Shown: piece after piece, positions 54,345 through 62,993 of the stretch | Numbering within the stretch: position 1 is the stretch's first letter | How the letters are laid out: every line of letters begins with the position of its first letter | Assembly (NCBI RefSeq): GCF_963676685.1 | Contig: NC_092350.1 | Coordinates: 28,458,001-28,522,000 of the forward strand | Origin: Mytilus edulis | Taxonomy: Eukaryota | Direction: 5' to 3' | Length of the DNA: 64,000 nt | Program-made: the position numbers and the translations under genes | The notes under the pieces: model-generated | What the model saw: only the letters and a program-made list of their open reading frames with translations | Database searches by the model: none | Told to the model about the DNA's origin: nothing

Positions 54345-56332
54345 CTAGAGGCTCTAAAGAGCCTGTGTCGCTCACCTTAGTCTATGTGAATATCAAACAA
54401 AGGACGCAGATGGATTTATGACAAAATTGTGTTTTGGTGATGGTGATGTGTTTGTACATCTTACTTTACTGAAAATTCTTGCTGCTTACAATTAGCTCTA
54501 TCTATAATGAACTTGGCCCAGTAGTTTCAGTGGAAGATGTTAGTAAAAATTTACAAATTTTATGAAAATTGTTAAAAATTGACTATAAAGGACAATCACT
54601 CCTTAGGGGGTCAATTGACCATTTTGGTCTTGTTGACTTATTTTTAGTCTTACTTTGCTGTACATTATTGTTGTTTACAGTTTTTCTCTATCTATAATAA
54701 TATTCAAGATAATAACAAACTAGAGGCTCTAAAGAGCCTGTGTCGCTCACCTTGGTCTATGTGCATATATACAATACCCTTCCCTTTCATGAATATGACC
54801 TACCGAATTAGACTATTTACCGGATTTGTAATCACATAAGCAACACGACGGGTGACACATGTGGAGCAGGATCTGCTTACCCTTCCGGAGCACCTGAGAT
54901 CACCCCTAGTTTTTGGTGGGGTTCGTGTTGTTTATTCTTTAGTTTTCTATGTTGTGTCGTGTGTACTATTGTTTTTCTGTTTGTCTTTTTCATTTTTAGC
55001 CATGGCGTTGTCAGTTTGTTTTAGATTTATGAGTTTGACTGTCCCTTTGGTATCTTTCGTCCCTCTTTTAAACAAAGGACACAAATAGATTCATGACAAA
55101 ATTGTATTTTGGTTATGGTGATGTGTTTGAAGTTCTTACTTTACTGAACGTTCTTGCTTCTTACAATTATATCTATAATGAACTTTGCCCATTAGTAACA
55201 GAGAAAATTATTTGGTAAAAATTTACATAAATTTACCAAATTAATGAAAATTGTTAAAAATTGACTATAAAGGGCAATAACTCCTTAAGGGGTCAATTGA
55301 CCATTTAGGTCATGCTGACTTATTTGTAGATCTTACTTTGCTGAACATTATTGCTGTTTACAGTTTATCTCCATCTATATTAGTATTAAAGATAATAACC
55401 AAAAACGGCAAAATTTCTTTAAAAATTACCAATTGGGGTCAGCATCCCAACAACCGGTTGTCCAATTCATCTAAAAATTTCAGGGCAGATAGATATTGAC
55501 TTGATTAACAATTTAACTTCTTGTCAGATTTGCTCTAAATGCTTTGGTTTCAGAGTTATAAGCCAAAATCTACATTTTACCCCTGTTTTAACATTTTACC
55601 CCTGTTTTATTTTTAGCCGTGGCAGCCATCTTAGTTGGATGGCCAGGTCATCGGACACATTTTTCAAACTAGATACCCCAAAGATGATGTTGGCCAAGTT
55701 TGGATTAATTTGGCCCAGTAGTTTCAGAGGAGAATATTTTTGTAAAAGATTACTTAAGATTTACGAAAAATGGTTAAAAATTGACTATAAAGGGCAATAA
55801 CTCCTAAAGGGGTCAACTGACCATTTCGGTCATGTTGACTTATTTGTAAATCTAACTTTGCTGAACATTATTGCTGTGTACAGTTTATCTATATCTATAA
55901 TAATATTCAAGATAATAACCAAAAACAGCAAAATTTCCTCAAAATTACCAATTCAGGGGCAGCAACCCAACAACAGGTTGACCGATTCATCTGAAAATTT
56001 CAGGGCAGATAGATCTTGACCTGATAAACATTTTTATCACGGTCAGATTTCCTTTAAATGCTTTGGTTTTTGAGTTATAAGCCAAAAACTGCATTTTACC
56101 CCTATGCACTATTTTTAGCTGTGGCGGCCATCTTGGTTGGTTCAACTTGGTTGGCCGGGTCACGCCACACATTTTTCAATCTAGATACCCCAATGATGAT
56201 TGTGGCCAGGTTTGGTTTAATTTGGCCCAGTAGTTTCAGAGGAAAAGATTTTTGTAAAAGTTAACGAAGATGGACGACGCCGGACGCAAAGTGATGAGAA
56301 AAGCTCACTTGGCCCTTCGGACCAGGTGAGCT
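54345..56332 (-). mobile_element. HINE family A copy with duplicated 3' end (54345 and 54720)
   Basis: Both termini present; ~500-bp units. Confidence 0.88.
54769..55068 (+). mobile_element. 300-bp interspersed repeat inserted in the HINE (retroelement 3'-end-like)
   Basis: Interrupts the HINE consensus gtgcatat|taaacaaagg; a degenerate relative lies at ~54005-54180. Confidence 0.7.
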
Positions 56333-56623
56333 AAAAAAGGCTTTTTATAGTTGTCAATTTAAAAGGAAAATCTGTTGTGAAAATGATAGCTGTGCTCAAG
56401 TGCACTTTTTATATAAATGTGCAACTATGTCATCAGTTTCTATCTAGAACACTGTTCAGCCTCTTTGTTTTGGACAAATATTAATAAATTTCATCTGCTT
56501 TTATAAATTCTTAAAAATTAGATTTTGATGGAAAATATCATGAATAAAAAGTTCTGTTCTTTTAATTCATGTACATTGACTTTCATACAATGCTGCAAAA
56601 AATATCTGGAATAAGTATAGGAG

Positions 56624-57898
56624 CTACTCTTTATTAATCATCCCATTAGTCAACAAAAAATCATATAATTTTCTTGTTTTGTTAACATCAATTTTGATCA
56701 AACTTCTAGCCTGTCCAAGTTTTAAACATCCATTTTTCTTACACTCATTAATCAGGGAATCACGAAATTCTATATAAGCCTCTGGAACCAATCTAATATT
56801 AGCGCAAATCTCTTGTTCTGTTTCTCCTAGTTTTTCATAACCTGGCAAACTAGAAATGTCTAATGGAGGTGCTGTTTTCCGAGGAGCATTTGGTAACACA
56901 ACTAAGCCTCCTTTTGACATATTGTCTAGCACAGCCTGCCTTTGAAGCCATGTTTGACAAGAAGTTTCATCTTTTAAATGTGATAATAGGTCTACCATAA
57001 GATGTCTTTTAGATTTCACTACATTTCTCCTTGAGTTAAGGATGTGATACATTTTACTCTGCTGCATAGAGGTCATGCCATTTTCTCTTCTGCTCTGAAG
57101 TTTCTTGATATCATGTTTTAATTCTCTCTCATAATGTATGGCCTCAATATATTTACAATATTCATCAGGTGACACCAATGTTATGAATACTCTCAACTTG
57201 TCAATAAGGTCCTTGATGGTGTAACTGTATCTACGGCTGGCCACTTGTACTTTTGGTATGTTGATCAGACCATAATCTCTGACAATTTTCTTCCTTTTCC
57301 ATCTCTCTTTCATGCAATCGTAATACACATCCAGAACTCCCAACTGCATTTTACTATCTTCATCCTCCTCATCAAAATCTAAATGTTTGATTTCCAGTTC
57401 CATGAAGTTGTCATATTCTATTGTGAAATCACCCCTTCCAGCCATATACCCACTGAGGTCGTTGTTTTCTGGGTAGCGTGGAGGGTCGTCACACAATTTA
57501 TATAGGATTGGCTGAGGATAAACAGTCCTCTCTGCCTCTTTAAAGTGAGGCAAGTCCTCATGAGGTTTATCAATGAAATATTTATTGTAATGATTCTGAC
57601 ATTCTGACTGACTTTTTGTCCGTAGCCTGTGAGCTACATCTGACCAGTTGCCATAGCCACAGTCTGACATGATGTCAAGTAACGTTGTTTCTTCCTCTGC
57701 CGTCCATATCTGTTCAAACAGCGGAAAATCTGTTCTACAAACAGTGTAGGGATGATCGTTTTGATGAACACCAAATATAACTCCTTTAGAGAAGCAATGA
57801 ACACAGATAGTCATGGAGTGACATACTTCAGCTTTACATACAATGTATGGCTTTCTTAGTTCACATTTACAATTCATACAATAGTGTTCCTCCTCCAT
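56624..57898 (-). CDS. TADA2A: Transcriptional adapter 2-alpha (Ada2a), single coding exon, 424 aa
   Basis: N-terminal ZZ-type zinc finger, SANT (WTAEEE..GYGNW), GYMAGRGDF, C-terminal SWIRM (KIDVNKTRKLYDFL). Confidence 0.93.
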   Translation of the reverse strand: MEEEHYCMNCKCELRKPYIVCKAEVCHSMTICVHCFSKGVIFGVHQNDHPYTVCRTDFPLFEQIWTAEEETTLLDIMSDCGYGNWSDVAHRLRTKSQSECQNHYNKYFIDKPHEDLPHFKEAERTVYPQPILYKLCDDPPRYPENNDLSGYMAGRGDFTIEYDNFMELEIKHLDFDEEDEDSKMQLGVLDVYYDCMKERWKRKKIVRDYGLINIPKVQVASRRYSYTIKDLIDKLRVFITLVSPDEYCKYIEAIHYERELKHDIKKLQSRRENGMTSMQQSKMYHILNSRRNVVKSKRHLMVDLLSHLKDETSCQTWLQRQAVLDNMSKGGLVVLPNAPRKTAPPLDISSLPGYEKLGETEQEICANIRLVPEAYIEFRDSLINECKKNGCLKLGQARSLIKIDVNKTRKLYDFLLTNGMINKE

Positions 57899-57993
57899 TT
57901 CAATGTTTGTTCAATAGTTCAGTATAATATCAAATTTTTAAAATTTTCCTTAATTCATTGTGAAAAATGTCTAAGAATTACTATGAGATGACT

Positions 57994-58065
57994 TTAGCCT
58001 AATTTTGGTCCTCCATCATGATAGTTGCCTGTTATTGAAGCACCACTGAAGTCAAAACCAGGATT
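57994..58065 (-). CDS. NUDCD2: NUDCD2 last coding exon
   Basis: Acceptor ttattttacag, then NPGFDFSGASITGNYHDGGPKLG*, matching the NUDCD2 C-terminus. Confidence 0.9.
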   Translation of the reverse strand, partial: NPGFDFSGASITGNYHDGGPKLG

Positions 58066-58564
58066 CTGTAAAATAATAAAACAATATTGTGCTATTAGTG
58101 TTCAACTTACTTAATTTTCTAATAAGGTCAACTTACAGTGTTGTCTTCTTTTCATCAGTTTTTGGAAATTGGAAATAATAACTCTCAGGAATTTTTCTAA
58201 ACAATCTAAAATTGAACTAGATACCTTATTAAAGACTCAGATGTAAAATTTAAGACCACAGTGCAAAAATTTCTTAAAGGCATGCTTTTCTTACTAAAAA
58301 TACATGGTCTGTTTGATTAAAGCTTTTCAGCTGTTTTCTGATTTTTTAGTCAAAATCATGATTTAAGGATAATAGCTGGAGCTAGCTCCTATACGTTGTT
58401 TCCAATGTAGGTATCAATAGTAGAGCTATAATAGTATTATTAAAAGGGGTACACAGTTATTTTCTATAATGATTTAATGCAAAATTAACATTCAGATTCT
58501 TTTGTTTTGATAAAAAGAGAATTGAATTTTTTACTTTAAAATATCAAATATTGACAGAATAAAA

Positions 58565-60110
58565 CTAGAGGCTCTAAAGAGCCTGTGTCGCTCACCTTGG
58601 TCTATGTGAATATTAAACAAAGGAAGCAGATGGATTCATGACAAAATTGTGTTTTGGTGATGGTGATGTGTACATCTTACTTTACTAAAGTCTTGCTGCT
58701 TACAATTATCTCTATCTATAATGAACTTGGCCCAGTAGTTTCAGTGGAAAATGTTAATAAAAATTTACAAATTTTATGAAAATTGATAAAAATTGACTAT
58801 AAAAGACAATAACTCCTTAGGGGGTCAATTGACCATTTCGGTCATTTTGATTTATTTGTAAATCTTACTTTGCTGAACATTATTGCTGTTTACAGTTTAT
58901 CTCTATCTATAAAAATATTCAAGATAATAACCAAAACTAAAGGCTCTAGAGCCTGTGTCGCTCACCTTGGTCTATGTGAATATTAAACAAAGGACACAGA
59001 TGAATTCAAGACAAAATTGTGGTTTGGTGATGGTGATGTGTTTGTAGGTCTTACTTTACTGAACATACTTGCTGCTTACAATTATCTCTATCTATAATGA
59101 ACTTGGCCCAGTAGTTACAGTTGAAAATATTAGTAAAATTTTACAAATTTTGTGAAAATTGTTAAAAAATTACTATATAAAGGGCAATAACTCCTTAGGA
59201 GATCAATTGACCATTTTGGTCATGTTGACTTCTTTTTAAGGTCTTACTTAACTGTACATTATTGCTGTTTACAGTTTATCTCTATCTATAATAATATTCA
59301 AGATAATATCCAAAAACTGCAAAATGTCCTTAAAATTACCAATTCAGGGGCAGCAACCCAACAAAGGGTTGTCCGATTGGTCTGTAAATTTCAGGGCAGA
59401 TAGATCTTGACCTGATTATAACAATTTTACACCATGTCAGATTTGCTCTAAATGCTTTGGTTTTTGAGTTATAACCCAAAAACTGCATTTTACCCCTATG
59501 TTCTATTTTTAGCCGTGGCGGCCATCTTGGTTGGAAGGCCAAGTCACCGGACACATTTTTTAAACTAGATACCCCAAAGATGATTGTGGCCAAGTTTGGA
59601 TTACTTTGGCCCTGTAGTTTCAGAGGAGAAGATTTTTGTAAAAGATTACTTAGATTTACGAAAAATGGTTAAAAATTGACTATAAAGGGCAATAACTCCT
59701 AAAGGGGTCAACTGACCATTTCGGTCATGTTGACTTATTTGTAAATCTAACTTTGCTGAACATTATTGCTGTTTACAGTTTATCTCTATCTATAATAATG
59801 TTCAAGATAATAACCAAAAACAGCAAAATTTCCTTAAAATTACCAATTCAGGGGCAGCAACCTAACAACAGGTTGTCCGATTCATCTGAAAATGTCAAGG
59901 CAGATAGATCTTGTCCTGATAACAATTTTACCCCTGTCAGATTTGCTCTAAATGCTTTGGTTTTTGAGTTATAAGCCAAAAACTGCATTTTACCCCTATG
60001 TTCTATTTTTAGACGTGGCGGCCATCTTTGTTAGTTGGCCGGGTCACCGGATACACCGGATACGCAAAGTGATGGGAAAAGCTCACATGGCCCTTCGGGC
60101 CAGGTGAGCT
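58565..60110 (-). mobile_element. HINE family A copy with duplicated 3' end (58565 and 58937), in the last NUDCD2 intron
   Basis: Both termini present; ~500-bp units. Confidence 0.88.
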
Positions 60111-61174
60111 AAAAATGCTTAAAATTTTGGTTTTGAAAAATTTATCATGTTTATTAGAAACTTTCATATGATTATTATTATGTTTTTATCAAATTTAATT
60201 AAATACTGACAAAATAGACCAAACCTTACCCTACTTTTGTCTTTAATGAAGAAAATCGCCAAATTCTCCCTGAAATGGAGATATAATCTTGTTTATAAAG
60301 TAATTAAAAATATATATTTATTAGCTAAAAATAAGTTCAATGAAGTAAAGACTGCCATTCAGTTCTCAAAATCCAAACATATTTTTTTTATGTTTTATAC
60401 TGTTACACATACATCATGTTACTTTAAAATTCTATTTCTATATCAACATTTGTATTGATTGATTGTTCTTTTCTTATTGTCCAGTTACACATATTTCATG
60501 TTTATATGCCATTATTATTAAATTACATTATTCTCATTAAACACATTTCATTGGAGAGCAGACAACAGTATTAGTAACTTAACTTTACTAGTTCCTTTTT
60601 TGATTATATAATTTAGAATATGTTGGCATGAAGAGAATAAATATAAAGACTCTACTTGGAATTCAGTGAAAGTTATCAGTTTTATCAATTTAAGAATAAG
60701 TCTTCTACAATATGTACTTAATTCTATTTTAAAAGTCAATGTTTCCTTATTTTCAATCCATCCTGTTTTCATGGTCTTTAACACTGAATTTATATCTATT
60801 TTTTTGGCATTAAAATATTACCAATCATTAAATAATTATTGTCATTCATTATTTTGTGTAAAATTTCACAATTTAGATCCAATTATTTTTTAATCTAGTC
60901 CTAATGTAAATTCATAATTATTGTGATGATTTTATTAATTGTGAAAAATGCTGCAGTATCAGATTTACATTACAGAAAACTTGCATTCGTAATTCCAGTA
61001 GTGATCTAGATCTCCCTTATAAATTTTTAGCAATCACATTTACATTTAACATGTTTGCCAGCAGTCAAATTTTAGCAATAATATATATATGCAACATTAG
61101 TTTCTGAATTAACAGTATATACAATTGTATTAAATATAAACTCATCATAAATAACAGGACTAAATTTTGCATAT

Positions 61175-61218
61175 ACGCCAGATGCGCGTTTCGTCTACAA
61201 AAGACTCATCAGTGACGC
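61175..61218 (-). ncRNA. Minimal type I hammerhead ribozyme motif within a Penelope/retrozyme-type repeat (61140-61270)
   Basis: Minus strand: gcgtca CTGATGA gtct tttgt agac GAAA cgcgc ATC tggcgt; stems I and II pair. Confidence 0.75.
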
Positions 61219-61297
61219 TCGAATCCAAAAAAGTTAAAAAGGCCAAATAAAGTACGAAGTTGAGGATTGAGTAATATATATGTAACTATATGAGGGT

Positions 61298-61554
61298 TGG
61301 AAGCCTCGGTGGACGAGTGGTCTAAGTAGTTACTACTGTAATCACTAGCCAGTCAACACTGAGGTTGTGAGTTCGAACCCTGCTCATGTGGGTGCACTCG
61401 ATTTCAATCTTAATTGACTAGGATTGTCAGTTTTCCTTTCAAAGGTCTGTGGTTTTCTTCTGGCACTCGGGCTTCCTCCACCAAATTAAAAACTGGGTGC
61501 CATGAAATAGCCTAAATCCAGAGCTTAAAAGTGGCGTTTAAACACCAAAAATCA
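61298..61554 (+). mobile_element. tRNA-derived SINE (V-domain-like core) with 10-bp TSD ATATGAGGGT
   Basis: A box TGGACGAGTGG, B box GTTCGAACC, ggttttcttctggcactcgggcttcctccacc core; TSD at 61288-61297 and 61555-61564. Confidence 0.85.
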
Positions 61555-61559
61555 ATATG

Positions 61560-61807
61560 AGGGTCTGGATGGGGTTTACAAAACAGGGAATAATTGGCAA
61601 AATGTCCAGAATACAGGGCAAATAGAAGAAAAGAGAAAAATAGGCCAAAAAAATAAAAATAAAGAATAATGGGGTTTAAATATAAAGAATTGAGAATACT
61701 AGGGTTTTAAAATATAAAGAATCAAGAATAATGTCATAATAGATAAAAGAACAAAATGGTATAAAATTAAATGAATAATGAAATGAAAGACCCCTGATTC
61801 AGACCCT
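61560..61807. mobile_element. Small MITE
   Basis: agggtctggatgggg ... cccctgattcagaccct imperfect TIRs. Confidence 0.6.
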
Positions 61808-62251
61808 AAAATATACCAAAACTAATATTCTAAATTAAATAGACACAGTAAATTCAGTATAGCTAATGAATGTCAGTTCAGAGGTAAATCAAATTACTGA
61901 TAAAGAATTTTGAAATTTATAATACATAAAATTTAGAATGGAAACGGGGAATGTGTCAAAGCGACAACAACCTGACCATAGAGCAGACAACAGCTGAAAG
62001 CCACCTATGGGTCTTCAATGTAGCGAGAAACTCCCGCACCCAGAGGCGTCCTTCAGCTGGGCCCTAAACAAATATGTATGCTAGTTCAGTGATAATGGAC
62101 GTCATACTAAACTCCGAATTATACACAAGAAACTAAAATTAAAAATGTATACATTTATCATGTTTATAGTCTAATTGAATATATCATGCATACATAACAG
62201 GATATTTTTTGCTGTCATTTTTAGAATTAAATTTGTAATAATCTGCTTTAC

Positions 62252-62403
62252 CTCGTTCTGAAATTTTTCCAATGTTAATTTTTGTTCCATCTGATCAAAG
62301 GTAGAGGGATCTGCTTCATATTGTGATTTTAACAATGACTTCCAACAGTTGCCAGCAGTACTATGGACCTTTGGTAAACAGATTCTTATCAACTTCTTAT
62401 CTT
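62252..62403 (-). CDS. NUDCD2: NUDCD2 internal exon (152 nt)
   Basis: (E)DKKLIRICLPKVHSTAGNCWKSLLKSQYEADPSTFDQMEQKLTLEKFQNE; AG/GT flanks, phase-compatible with neighbouring exons. Confidence 0.92.
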
Positions 62404-62993
62404 CTGTAAACATGTATGTACATAGTCAGTAAAATTTTTCAAGTCTTTCTATTCAATTCAGTAAACCAGAACAAAACCAATGCTGACAATTCAACGAAAG
62501 TTCTATGTCAATTTCGGTTTCACTGATCATGCCAATTTAATATTACATATATATAATATTATAAAAGATTAATATTAAATGAACAGTGATATAAGAATAT
62601 CATGAATATGGCATGTATGTTTTCTTAATTCTCTTTTGAGTCAGCCAATTTTATATTATTGATCACACATTTTTTATCATATAAAAAAATAAGAAGATGT
62701 GGTATAACTGCCAATGAGACAACTCTCCACAGGAGAACAAATGAAATAGAAGTTATCAGCCATAGTTCACAGTACAGTCTTTACTCTTTAACAAAGAGCA
62801 AACCCATACCCCATAGTTAACTTAAAAGCCCCTAAATGACAAATGTAAAACAATTTAAACAAGAAAAAATAAAGGCCTGATTTATGTACAAAATAAAAAT
62901 AAAAGTGATTGATACCTTATATATAGTGTTTCTGATACAAAATGATTTACAAAAGTCCTTTGTCAATACTCAAATTATTAAACAAACTTATAC

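Follow-up and report, generated by a model that had tools for sequence, protein, structure and literature searches.

We find that the co-chaperone gene NUDCD2 and TADA2A, which encodes a chromatin adaptor, lie in one shared transcription unit in Mytilus edulis, a conclusion well supported by assembled contigs and raw RNA reads. We put at about 65% the probability that this is a conserved dicistronic locus of mytilids, expressed through a shared mRNA. In this model, transcription would start from the NUDCD2 promoter and splicing of the pre-mRNA would connect exons 1-3, directly or by way of a conserved 40-nt cassette, to a terminal exon uniting the C-terminus of NUDCD2, an A+T-rich spacer of 95 nt and the complete TADA2A ORF. 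Polyadenylation would occur after TADA2A alone, via an AATAAA in its last codons, and TADA2A would be placed inside what would otherwise be the 3' UTR of NUDCD2. We infer that, in the main mature mRNA, single molecules carry both ORFs and that TADA2A protein is made from them. Models of NUDCD2 and TADA2A are already contained in the public annotation.

The 3' three quarters of NUDCD2 are found on the minus strand of the window, by which we mean the whole 64-kb stretch of DNA analysed. Exon 1 with the ATG falls 2.85 kb past the end of the window (window-equivalent positions 66852-66667; 2852-2667 of locus L002). It is followed on the same strand by exon 2 (63042-62994; 49 nt, GDLHKAVHADEAVWTL), which has canonical AG/GT sites and matches the database protein P0122, and by exon 3 (62403-62252; 152 nt, ...EDKKLIRI...LEKFQNE), covered by contigs of runs X1 and X5 and by stranded reads. 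The coding part of the terminal exon (58065-57994) follows the acceptor ...TTTTACAG and encodes NPGFDFSGASITGNYHDGGPKLG, 23 amino acids ahead of a TAA at 57996-57994. All NUDCD2 splice sites are canonical, and the exon translations equal P0122, a protein of 152 aa with PF04969 that RefSeq names 'nudC domain-containing protein 2-like isoform X1 [Mytilus edulis]' and whose C-terminus is that of the terminal exon. The product carries the CS domain, the conserved C-terminal NPGFDFSG tail and the length of about 150-157 aa proper to the NUDCD2 family. Its start codon is in a good context, GAAATGG, with A at -3 and G at +4.

The C-terminus of NUDCD2 varies in Mytilus records, with forms of 152 aa (...KLG), 156 aa (...KLSHSNS) and 158 aa (...KLGSSHSNS). 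Because of these differences, the stop codon and the first bases of the spacer (57994-57970) must be polymorphic, with a spacer length varying by about 20 nt. At the other end of the gene, Logan contigs of 907-1516 nt read from exon 1 into intron 1 (L002 2852-2586, window-equivalent 66852-66586), with ORFs of 89 aa and 73 aa (P0121, P0174-P0176); they point to intron-1 retention or to products of early termination.

The spacer (57993-57899, minus strand; 95 nt, 77.9% A+T) is followed by the intronless TADA2A ORF (57898-56624, minus strand; 424 aa and TAG). Neither AATAAA nor ATTAAA is present in the spacer, which holds only the weak variant AATGAA, and from the NUDCD2 stop to 57586 there is no canonical poly(A) signal; at 57586, early in the TADA2A ORF, an AATAAA occurs. 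A micro-uORF, ATG AAT TAA (ATGAATTAA), begins at 57958 within the spacer, and a second small uORF, MMEDQN*, begins at 58019/58016 inside the terminal exon of NUDCD2, both on the minus strand. The context of the TADA2A ATG is ATTGAAATGG. The scan for signals also gave, on the minus strand, an AATAAA in the last TADA2A codons (56635-56630) and an ATTAAA at 56566. Two complete, non-overlapping ORFs thus stand on one strand, with a short spacer free of cleavage and poly(A) signals, as in a dicistronic gene.

A preliminary description of this DNA, drawn from its letters, had put the NUDCD2 stop at 57994-57996 and the TADA2A ATG at 57898 on the same strand with a gap of 95 nt, and had called the spacer AT-rich, devoid of AATAAA and ATTAAA and endowed with a micro-uORF; it had seen poly(A)-like signals at the end of TADA2A and had taken an in-frame TGA five codons ahead of its ATG to exclude a fusion. 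All of this holds. Read-through or frameshifting into a fusion protein is rejected, as the two frames differ, the NUDCD2 frame meets a TGA 12 codons past its stop and the TADA2A frame has the TGA five codons ahead of its ATG.

We mapped RNA on positions 56460-62450, using two stranded raw RNA-seq runs labelled as a sister Mytilus (X21 and X22) and Logan contigs of runs X1 and X5, from two further studies. Record 8 of X5, a contig of 1903 nt, covers 56596-58065 without a break, continues in a cassette exon at 60269-60230 and then in exon 3; its remaining 239 nt equal exon 2 plus exon 1, up to about 4 nt ahead of the NUDCD2 ATG. Record 1 of X1 (1559 nt), from a different study, has identical joints. 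Together, the contigs of X1 and X5 link NUDCD2 exons 1-3 through the cassette and terminal exons to the spacer and the entire TADA2A ORF, with the reservation that Logan contigs are short-read assemblies in which mRNAs overlapping by at least 31 nt would fuse, and that a two-gene contig is no demonstration of a single transcript. The terminal exon that the preliminary description had thought common to both genes is indeed continuous in both contigs, from 58065 through the spacer and TADA2A.

The joints 58065->60230 and 60268->62251 are present in both contigs and in 2+1 and 2+2 raw reads, respectively, of X21 and X22, a low support of 1-2 reads per joint and run. The canonical joint 62252->58065 is not among the joints listed, for which the threshold was 3 reads or one contig. 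Coverage in X21 and X22 is wholly in the orientation of minus-strand RNA. Over the stretch 58066-58460 of the last intron RNA is essentially absent, with zero depth at 58260-58460 and a value of about 0.1 at 58060-58259; the RNA signal therefore does not stem from contaminating DNA, and a start site in the intron adjoining the terminal exon is rejected. The mature RNA is thus continuous across the spacer and spliced to NUDCD2 exons in two contigs and two stranded runs.

Corrected for the exon's share of its bin, the depth of exon 3 is about 11 and 4.6, to be compared with about 5 and 5 for TADA2A. Since exon 3 is no less covered than TADA2A, additional TADA2A-only RNA is not needed to explain the coverage. 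The apparent 3' end of the RNA lies near 56596-56620 on the minus strand, downstream of the AATAAA at 56635-56630: the X5 contig ends at 56596, and within the bin 56460-56659 raw depth drops from about 2.7 to 0.2, in data whose depth of 2-8x is too low to call pile-ups of starts or ends. A check for a spliced-leader acceptor in the spacer (57899-57993) found no loose ends or joints among those listed, and we know of no report of spliced-leader trans-splicing in molluscs.

Two separate, overlapping mRNAs could leave similar traces. NUDCD2 RNA would then be cleaved in the spacer or early in TADA2A, for instance after the AATAAA at 57586, TADA2A would have its own cap in the terminal exon or spacer, and the assembly would merge the two, as De Bruijn contigs do with overlapping RNAs. 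Canonical cap-dependent translation would suffice, with no special mechanism. The spacer offers A/T-rich, TATA-like runs; the bin 57860-58059 has a depth of 2.6 and 2.0, below that of the TADA2A body (about 5); and the RefSeq TADA2A protein of M. galloprovincialis bears no isoform number and may come from a separate gene model. However, such a dip is expected beside a triple splice junction, where reads are only partially laid, and TADA2A is not covered more deeply than exon 3 of NUDCD2. The spacer and the terminal NUDCD2 exon lack a canonical poly(A) signal, and the absence of RNA in the intron before the acceptor confines any start site to the 167 nt ahead of the TADA2A ATG. The ratio of observed to expected CpG is 0.12-0.36 around the TADA2A 5' end, with no signature of an unmethylated promoter, versus 0.65-0.81 at and upstream of NUDCD2 exon 1: a promoter-proximal, CpG-richer region is shown at NUDCD2 exon 1 and none at TADA2A. 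Finally, all six Mytilus Logan contigs holding TADA2A measure 1654-3428 nt, each exceeding the 1470 nt that separate the terminal-exon acceptor from the end of the RNA, the greatest length that a monocistronic mRNA could have. We regard separate mRNAs as possible, if rather unlikely.

The cassette exon of the shared unit (60269-60230, minus strand; 40 nt), which the preliminary description had missed, has strong splice sites. It reads GGA GAA TTT GGC GAT TTT CTT CAT TAA, that is GEFGDFLH and a stop at 60245-60243, and shortens NUDCD2 to 137 aa ending in ...FQNEGEFGDFLH. The whole terminal exon is then untranslated, and 180 nt of mature RNA separate the stop from the TADA2A ATG; the distance of 95 nt given in the preliminary description applies to the canonical form, not to this one. 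The cassette form is the one assembled in both Mytilus contig runs. An identical GEFGDFLH tail ends the 137-aa NUDCD2 of another mytilid (P0125, P0144), 73-77% identical to that of Mytilus, and RefSeq has 137-aa NUDCD2 isoforms for M. edulis, M. galloprovincialis and M. californianus, which argues that the cassette exon is not noise.

Under the usual 50-nt rule for nonsense-mediated decay, the cassette form should escape degradation, as its stop is placed 13 nt before the last exon junction. Splicing of the cassette yields no TADA2A-only mRNA, because the NUDCD2 ORF is retained. The preliminary description had proposed one unit giving either a common mRNA or alternatively spliced forms from one promoter: contigs and junction reads bear out the shared unit, and the alternative splicing observed does not supply the TADA2A-only mRNA implied by the second proposal. 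Separately, in a database model of M. coruscus (P0166, 167 aa) the cassette region (60230-60274) is read in another frame (VQENLEIFFIKDKNR), in-frame with the terminal exon; this is probably a gene-prediction artefact, but could reflect a real alternative acceptor in that species.

Other features share this neighbourhood. An interspersed repeat of roughly 370-500 nt has several copies in the last NUDCD2 intron (58560-60100) and downstream of TADA2A (55338-56264). Its families D1-D5 are 89-95% alike, with an RNA depth of hundreds to thousands, mostly in one orientation, and loose RNA ends at 59644 enter a (GACGAC/GGAC)n-like tract; it looks like an abundant transcribed mobile element. In the same intron, the stretch 61300-61480 of the minus strand contains GGTTCGAACTCACAACC, resembling the B box of a tRNA, with moderate RNA depth in both orientations. 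A search of this intron with ARAGORN gave no tRNA gene; the stretch may be a tRNA-derived SINE.

The TADA2A ORF encodes four domains, all above curated cut-offs, in the order ZZ_ADA2 (PF25299, 7-53), SANT/Myb (PF00249, 65-108), TADA2A-like_3rd (PF22941, 148-219) and SWIRM (PF04433, 355-422). Its identity to the M. galloprovincialis protein that RefSeq calls 'transcriptional adapter 2-alpha-like' is 99%, and its best matches in other animals all bear the name transcriptional adapter 2-alpha. A maximum-likelihood tree places the mytilid TADA2A clade inside Pteriomorphia, together with scallops and oysters, at 97/90 support. Accelerated evolution of the intronless gene is rejected: its stem branch of 0.47 is similar to that of scallops, 0.49. 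By these comparisons, the mytilid intronless TADA2A is taken as a true orthologue, rather than a decaying copy or a divergent paralogue.

The assembly of 1.37 Gb has a single full-length TADA2A. A second PF22941 locus, on another chromosome (G000:C3:30545103-30545222, L004), has its domain split by an intron of about 1.1 kb and is most likely the TADA2B paralogue. Among the variant sites listed in the TADA2A ORF, 7 of 10 are synonymous, which fits purifying selection. Judged by its single full copy, its placement as an orthologue without acceleration and its synonymous variants, TADA2A is functional. Two scans of metagenome contigs with mytilid TADA2A proteins found no relative.

A look-up of protein clusters supports the NUDCD2/TADA2A layout in three mytilid lineages, Mytilus and two others. 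In the latter, NUDCD2 and TADA2A come from contigs of equal size, which points indirectly to co-location of the two genes: 2113 nt for a 137-aa NUDCD2 and a 427-aa TADA2A, 1824 nt for proteins of 151 aa and 432 aa, and 762,426 nt for a third pair. If the 1824-nt contig holds both the 151-aa and the 432-aa ORFs, as it appears to, at most 66 nt would be left for the spacer and both ends. On the 762,426-nt contig, the gene call for NUDCD2 exon 1 is a 68-aa ORF that extends into the intron; this points to a prokaryote-style gene caller, by which the 427-aa TADA2A there would also be intronless. A spacing of 95 nt or less appears to be kept across mytilid genera.

RefSeq numbers a TADA2A-like isoform X1 and NUDCD2-like isoforms X2 and X3 consecutively in M. 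californianus, and similarly in M. trossulus, so that both proteins appear to come from one gene model in these species. Five other lophotrochozoans were compared: the unionid mussel Sinanodonta, the gastropods Gigantopelta, Patella and Plakobranchus, and the tubeworm Lamellibrachia. In each, the chromosome or scaffold that carries NUDCD2 differs in length from the one that carries TADA2A, which makes the linkage a derived state. The synteny that the preliminary description had suggested checking in other molluscs is supported within mytilids by equal-size contigs, and absent from the five other lophotrochozoans.

The same data bear on whether the joined RNA is mere noise, a minor by-product of failed termination between two independent genes that plays no role in TADA2A expression. 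Conjoined read-through transcripts of close tandem genes are common in animals, and the junction reads are few. Yet the joined form was assembled in every run examined, depth is similar over both ORFs and there is no termination signal present to fail; moreover, contig sizes point to the joined form in two further mytilid lineages, and the spacing of at most 95 nt is kept across mytilid genera. We consider noise of this kind very improbable.

Most likely, the TADA2A of the shared unit descends from an ancient retrocopy, inserted directly behind the NUDCD2 stop, that took the place of its parental gene. Its location is new with respect to the ancestral one, represented by the five lophotrochozoans, and the single full copy means that a parental one is absent. 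The ORF is uninterrupted, whereas an intron divides the other PF22941 locus of M. edulis. Taken together, the relocation, the apparent loss of every intron and the lack of a parental copy argue that TADA2A was retroposed into the 3' UTR of NUDCD2 and that the parent was then lost. In the sequence around the ORF we found no A-run after TADA2A and no flanking direct repeat; if retroposition predates the mytilid radiation, decay of the poly(A) remnant and of the target-site duplication would be expected.

Efficient translation of a second ORF behind one of 137-152 codons is unusual in eukaryotes, which weighs against the shared-mRNA model. How TADA2A would be translated from the shared mRNA can be narrowed down. 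Leaky scanning as the main route is rejected, since the NUDCD2 start is strong and ten ATGs stand ahead of the TADA2A ATG, a number close to chance expectation. A structured IRES finds no support: the predicted fold of the spacer is no stabler than shuffles (z -0.48) and an Rfam search of the spacer gave no match at E <= 1. The routes remaining are reinitiation, entry on an unstructured A/U-rich sequence, or a minor monocistronic mRNA starting within the 167 nt. If TADA2A is made from the shared mRNA, ribosomes would most likely reach it by termination-reinitiation or by entering, independently of the cap, at the unstructured A/U-rich spacer.

A stricter version would make the dicistronic mRNA obligate: the sole TADA2A would be produced solely by reinitiation or cap-independent entry after an ORF of 137-152 codons, and the cassette exon would act as a switch, lengthening the distance between the upstream stop and the TADA2A ATG from 95 to 180 nt and tuning the amount of TADA2A relative to NUDCD2. 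We find this version doubtful.

It is rare in animals, and poorly understood, for an essential protein to be expressed efficiently from the second ORF of a cellular mRNA when the first one is full-length. The mytilid locus offers a natural test case in a heavily sequenced, tractable animal, with conservation across genera, a short spacer and an alternative exon that changes its length. With retroposition as its probable origin, it would also illustrate how a parent gene can be supplanted by a retrocopy inserted in the 3' UTR of a host. On the practical side, the RefSeq 'isoform' labels given to NUDCD2 and TADA2A in some Mytilus can mislead analyses of orthology and expression.

Two genes on one message are an uncommon layout in animals, not an unknown one. 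Dicistronic mRNAs include human RPP14/HTD2, CERS1-GDF1 and SNURF-SNRPN, and Drosophila stoned and Adh-Adhr; in each, a single mRNA, capped and polyadenylated, carries two unrelated, non-overlapping ORFs separated by a short spacer, and trans-splicing is not involved. None of these involves NUDCD2 or TADA2A, and in the mussel, unlike these, the downstream ORF encodes an essential chromatin factor that has no other copy in the genome. Our literature searches returned nothing relevant on NUDCD2 together with TADA2A, or on nuclear polycistronic or dicistronic genes in Mytilus or molluscs.

By analogy, animal dicistronic mRNAs such as RPP14/HTD2 and CERS1-GDF1, along with host-driven retrogenes, would be the closest mechanistic analogues. 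Like the latter, mytilid TADA2A would be an intronless copy of a normally intron-bearing family in a new chromosome context, with host exons as a leader and the parent absent. As a rule, host-driven retrogenes lie within introns and are spliced around the ORF of their host, whereas mytilid TADA2A sits after the host stop and the full NUDCD2 ORF remains upstream. In green algae, polycistronic nuclear genes are described as conserved co-linear ORF pairs on a single mRNA, translated by leaky scanning (PMC11291117). The conserved co-linear pair is common to the algal genes and the mussel locus; leaky scanning is unlikely in the mussel.

The preliminary description had also stated that Drosophila Ada2a shares a transcription unit with Rpb4, which is stated in the literature, where the unit is termed a 'bi-cistronic operon' (PMC7413394). 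In both animals the ATAC adaptor Ada2a shares its transcription unit with an unrelated housekeeping gene, but the partner is Rpb4 in the fly and NUDCD2 in the mussel. Muratoglu et al. (2003) reportedly found that the two fly proteins arise through alternative splicing of shared 5' exons. Mussel TADA2A differs in being a complete, intronless second ORF after a complete first ORF, with no fusion possible. Because the two genes are unlinked in other molluscs, the fly and mussel cases are independent, and the mytilid locus stands as a separate parallel to the Ada2a/Rpb4 unit.
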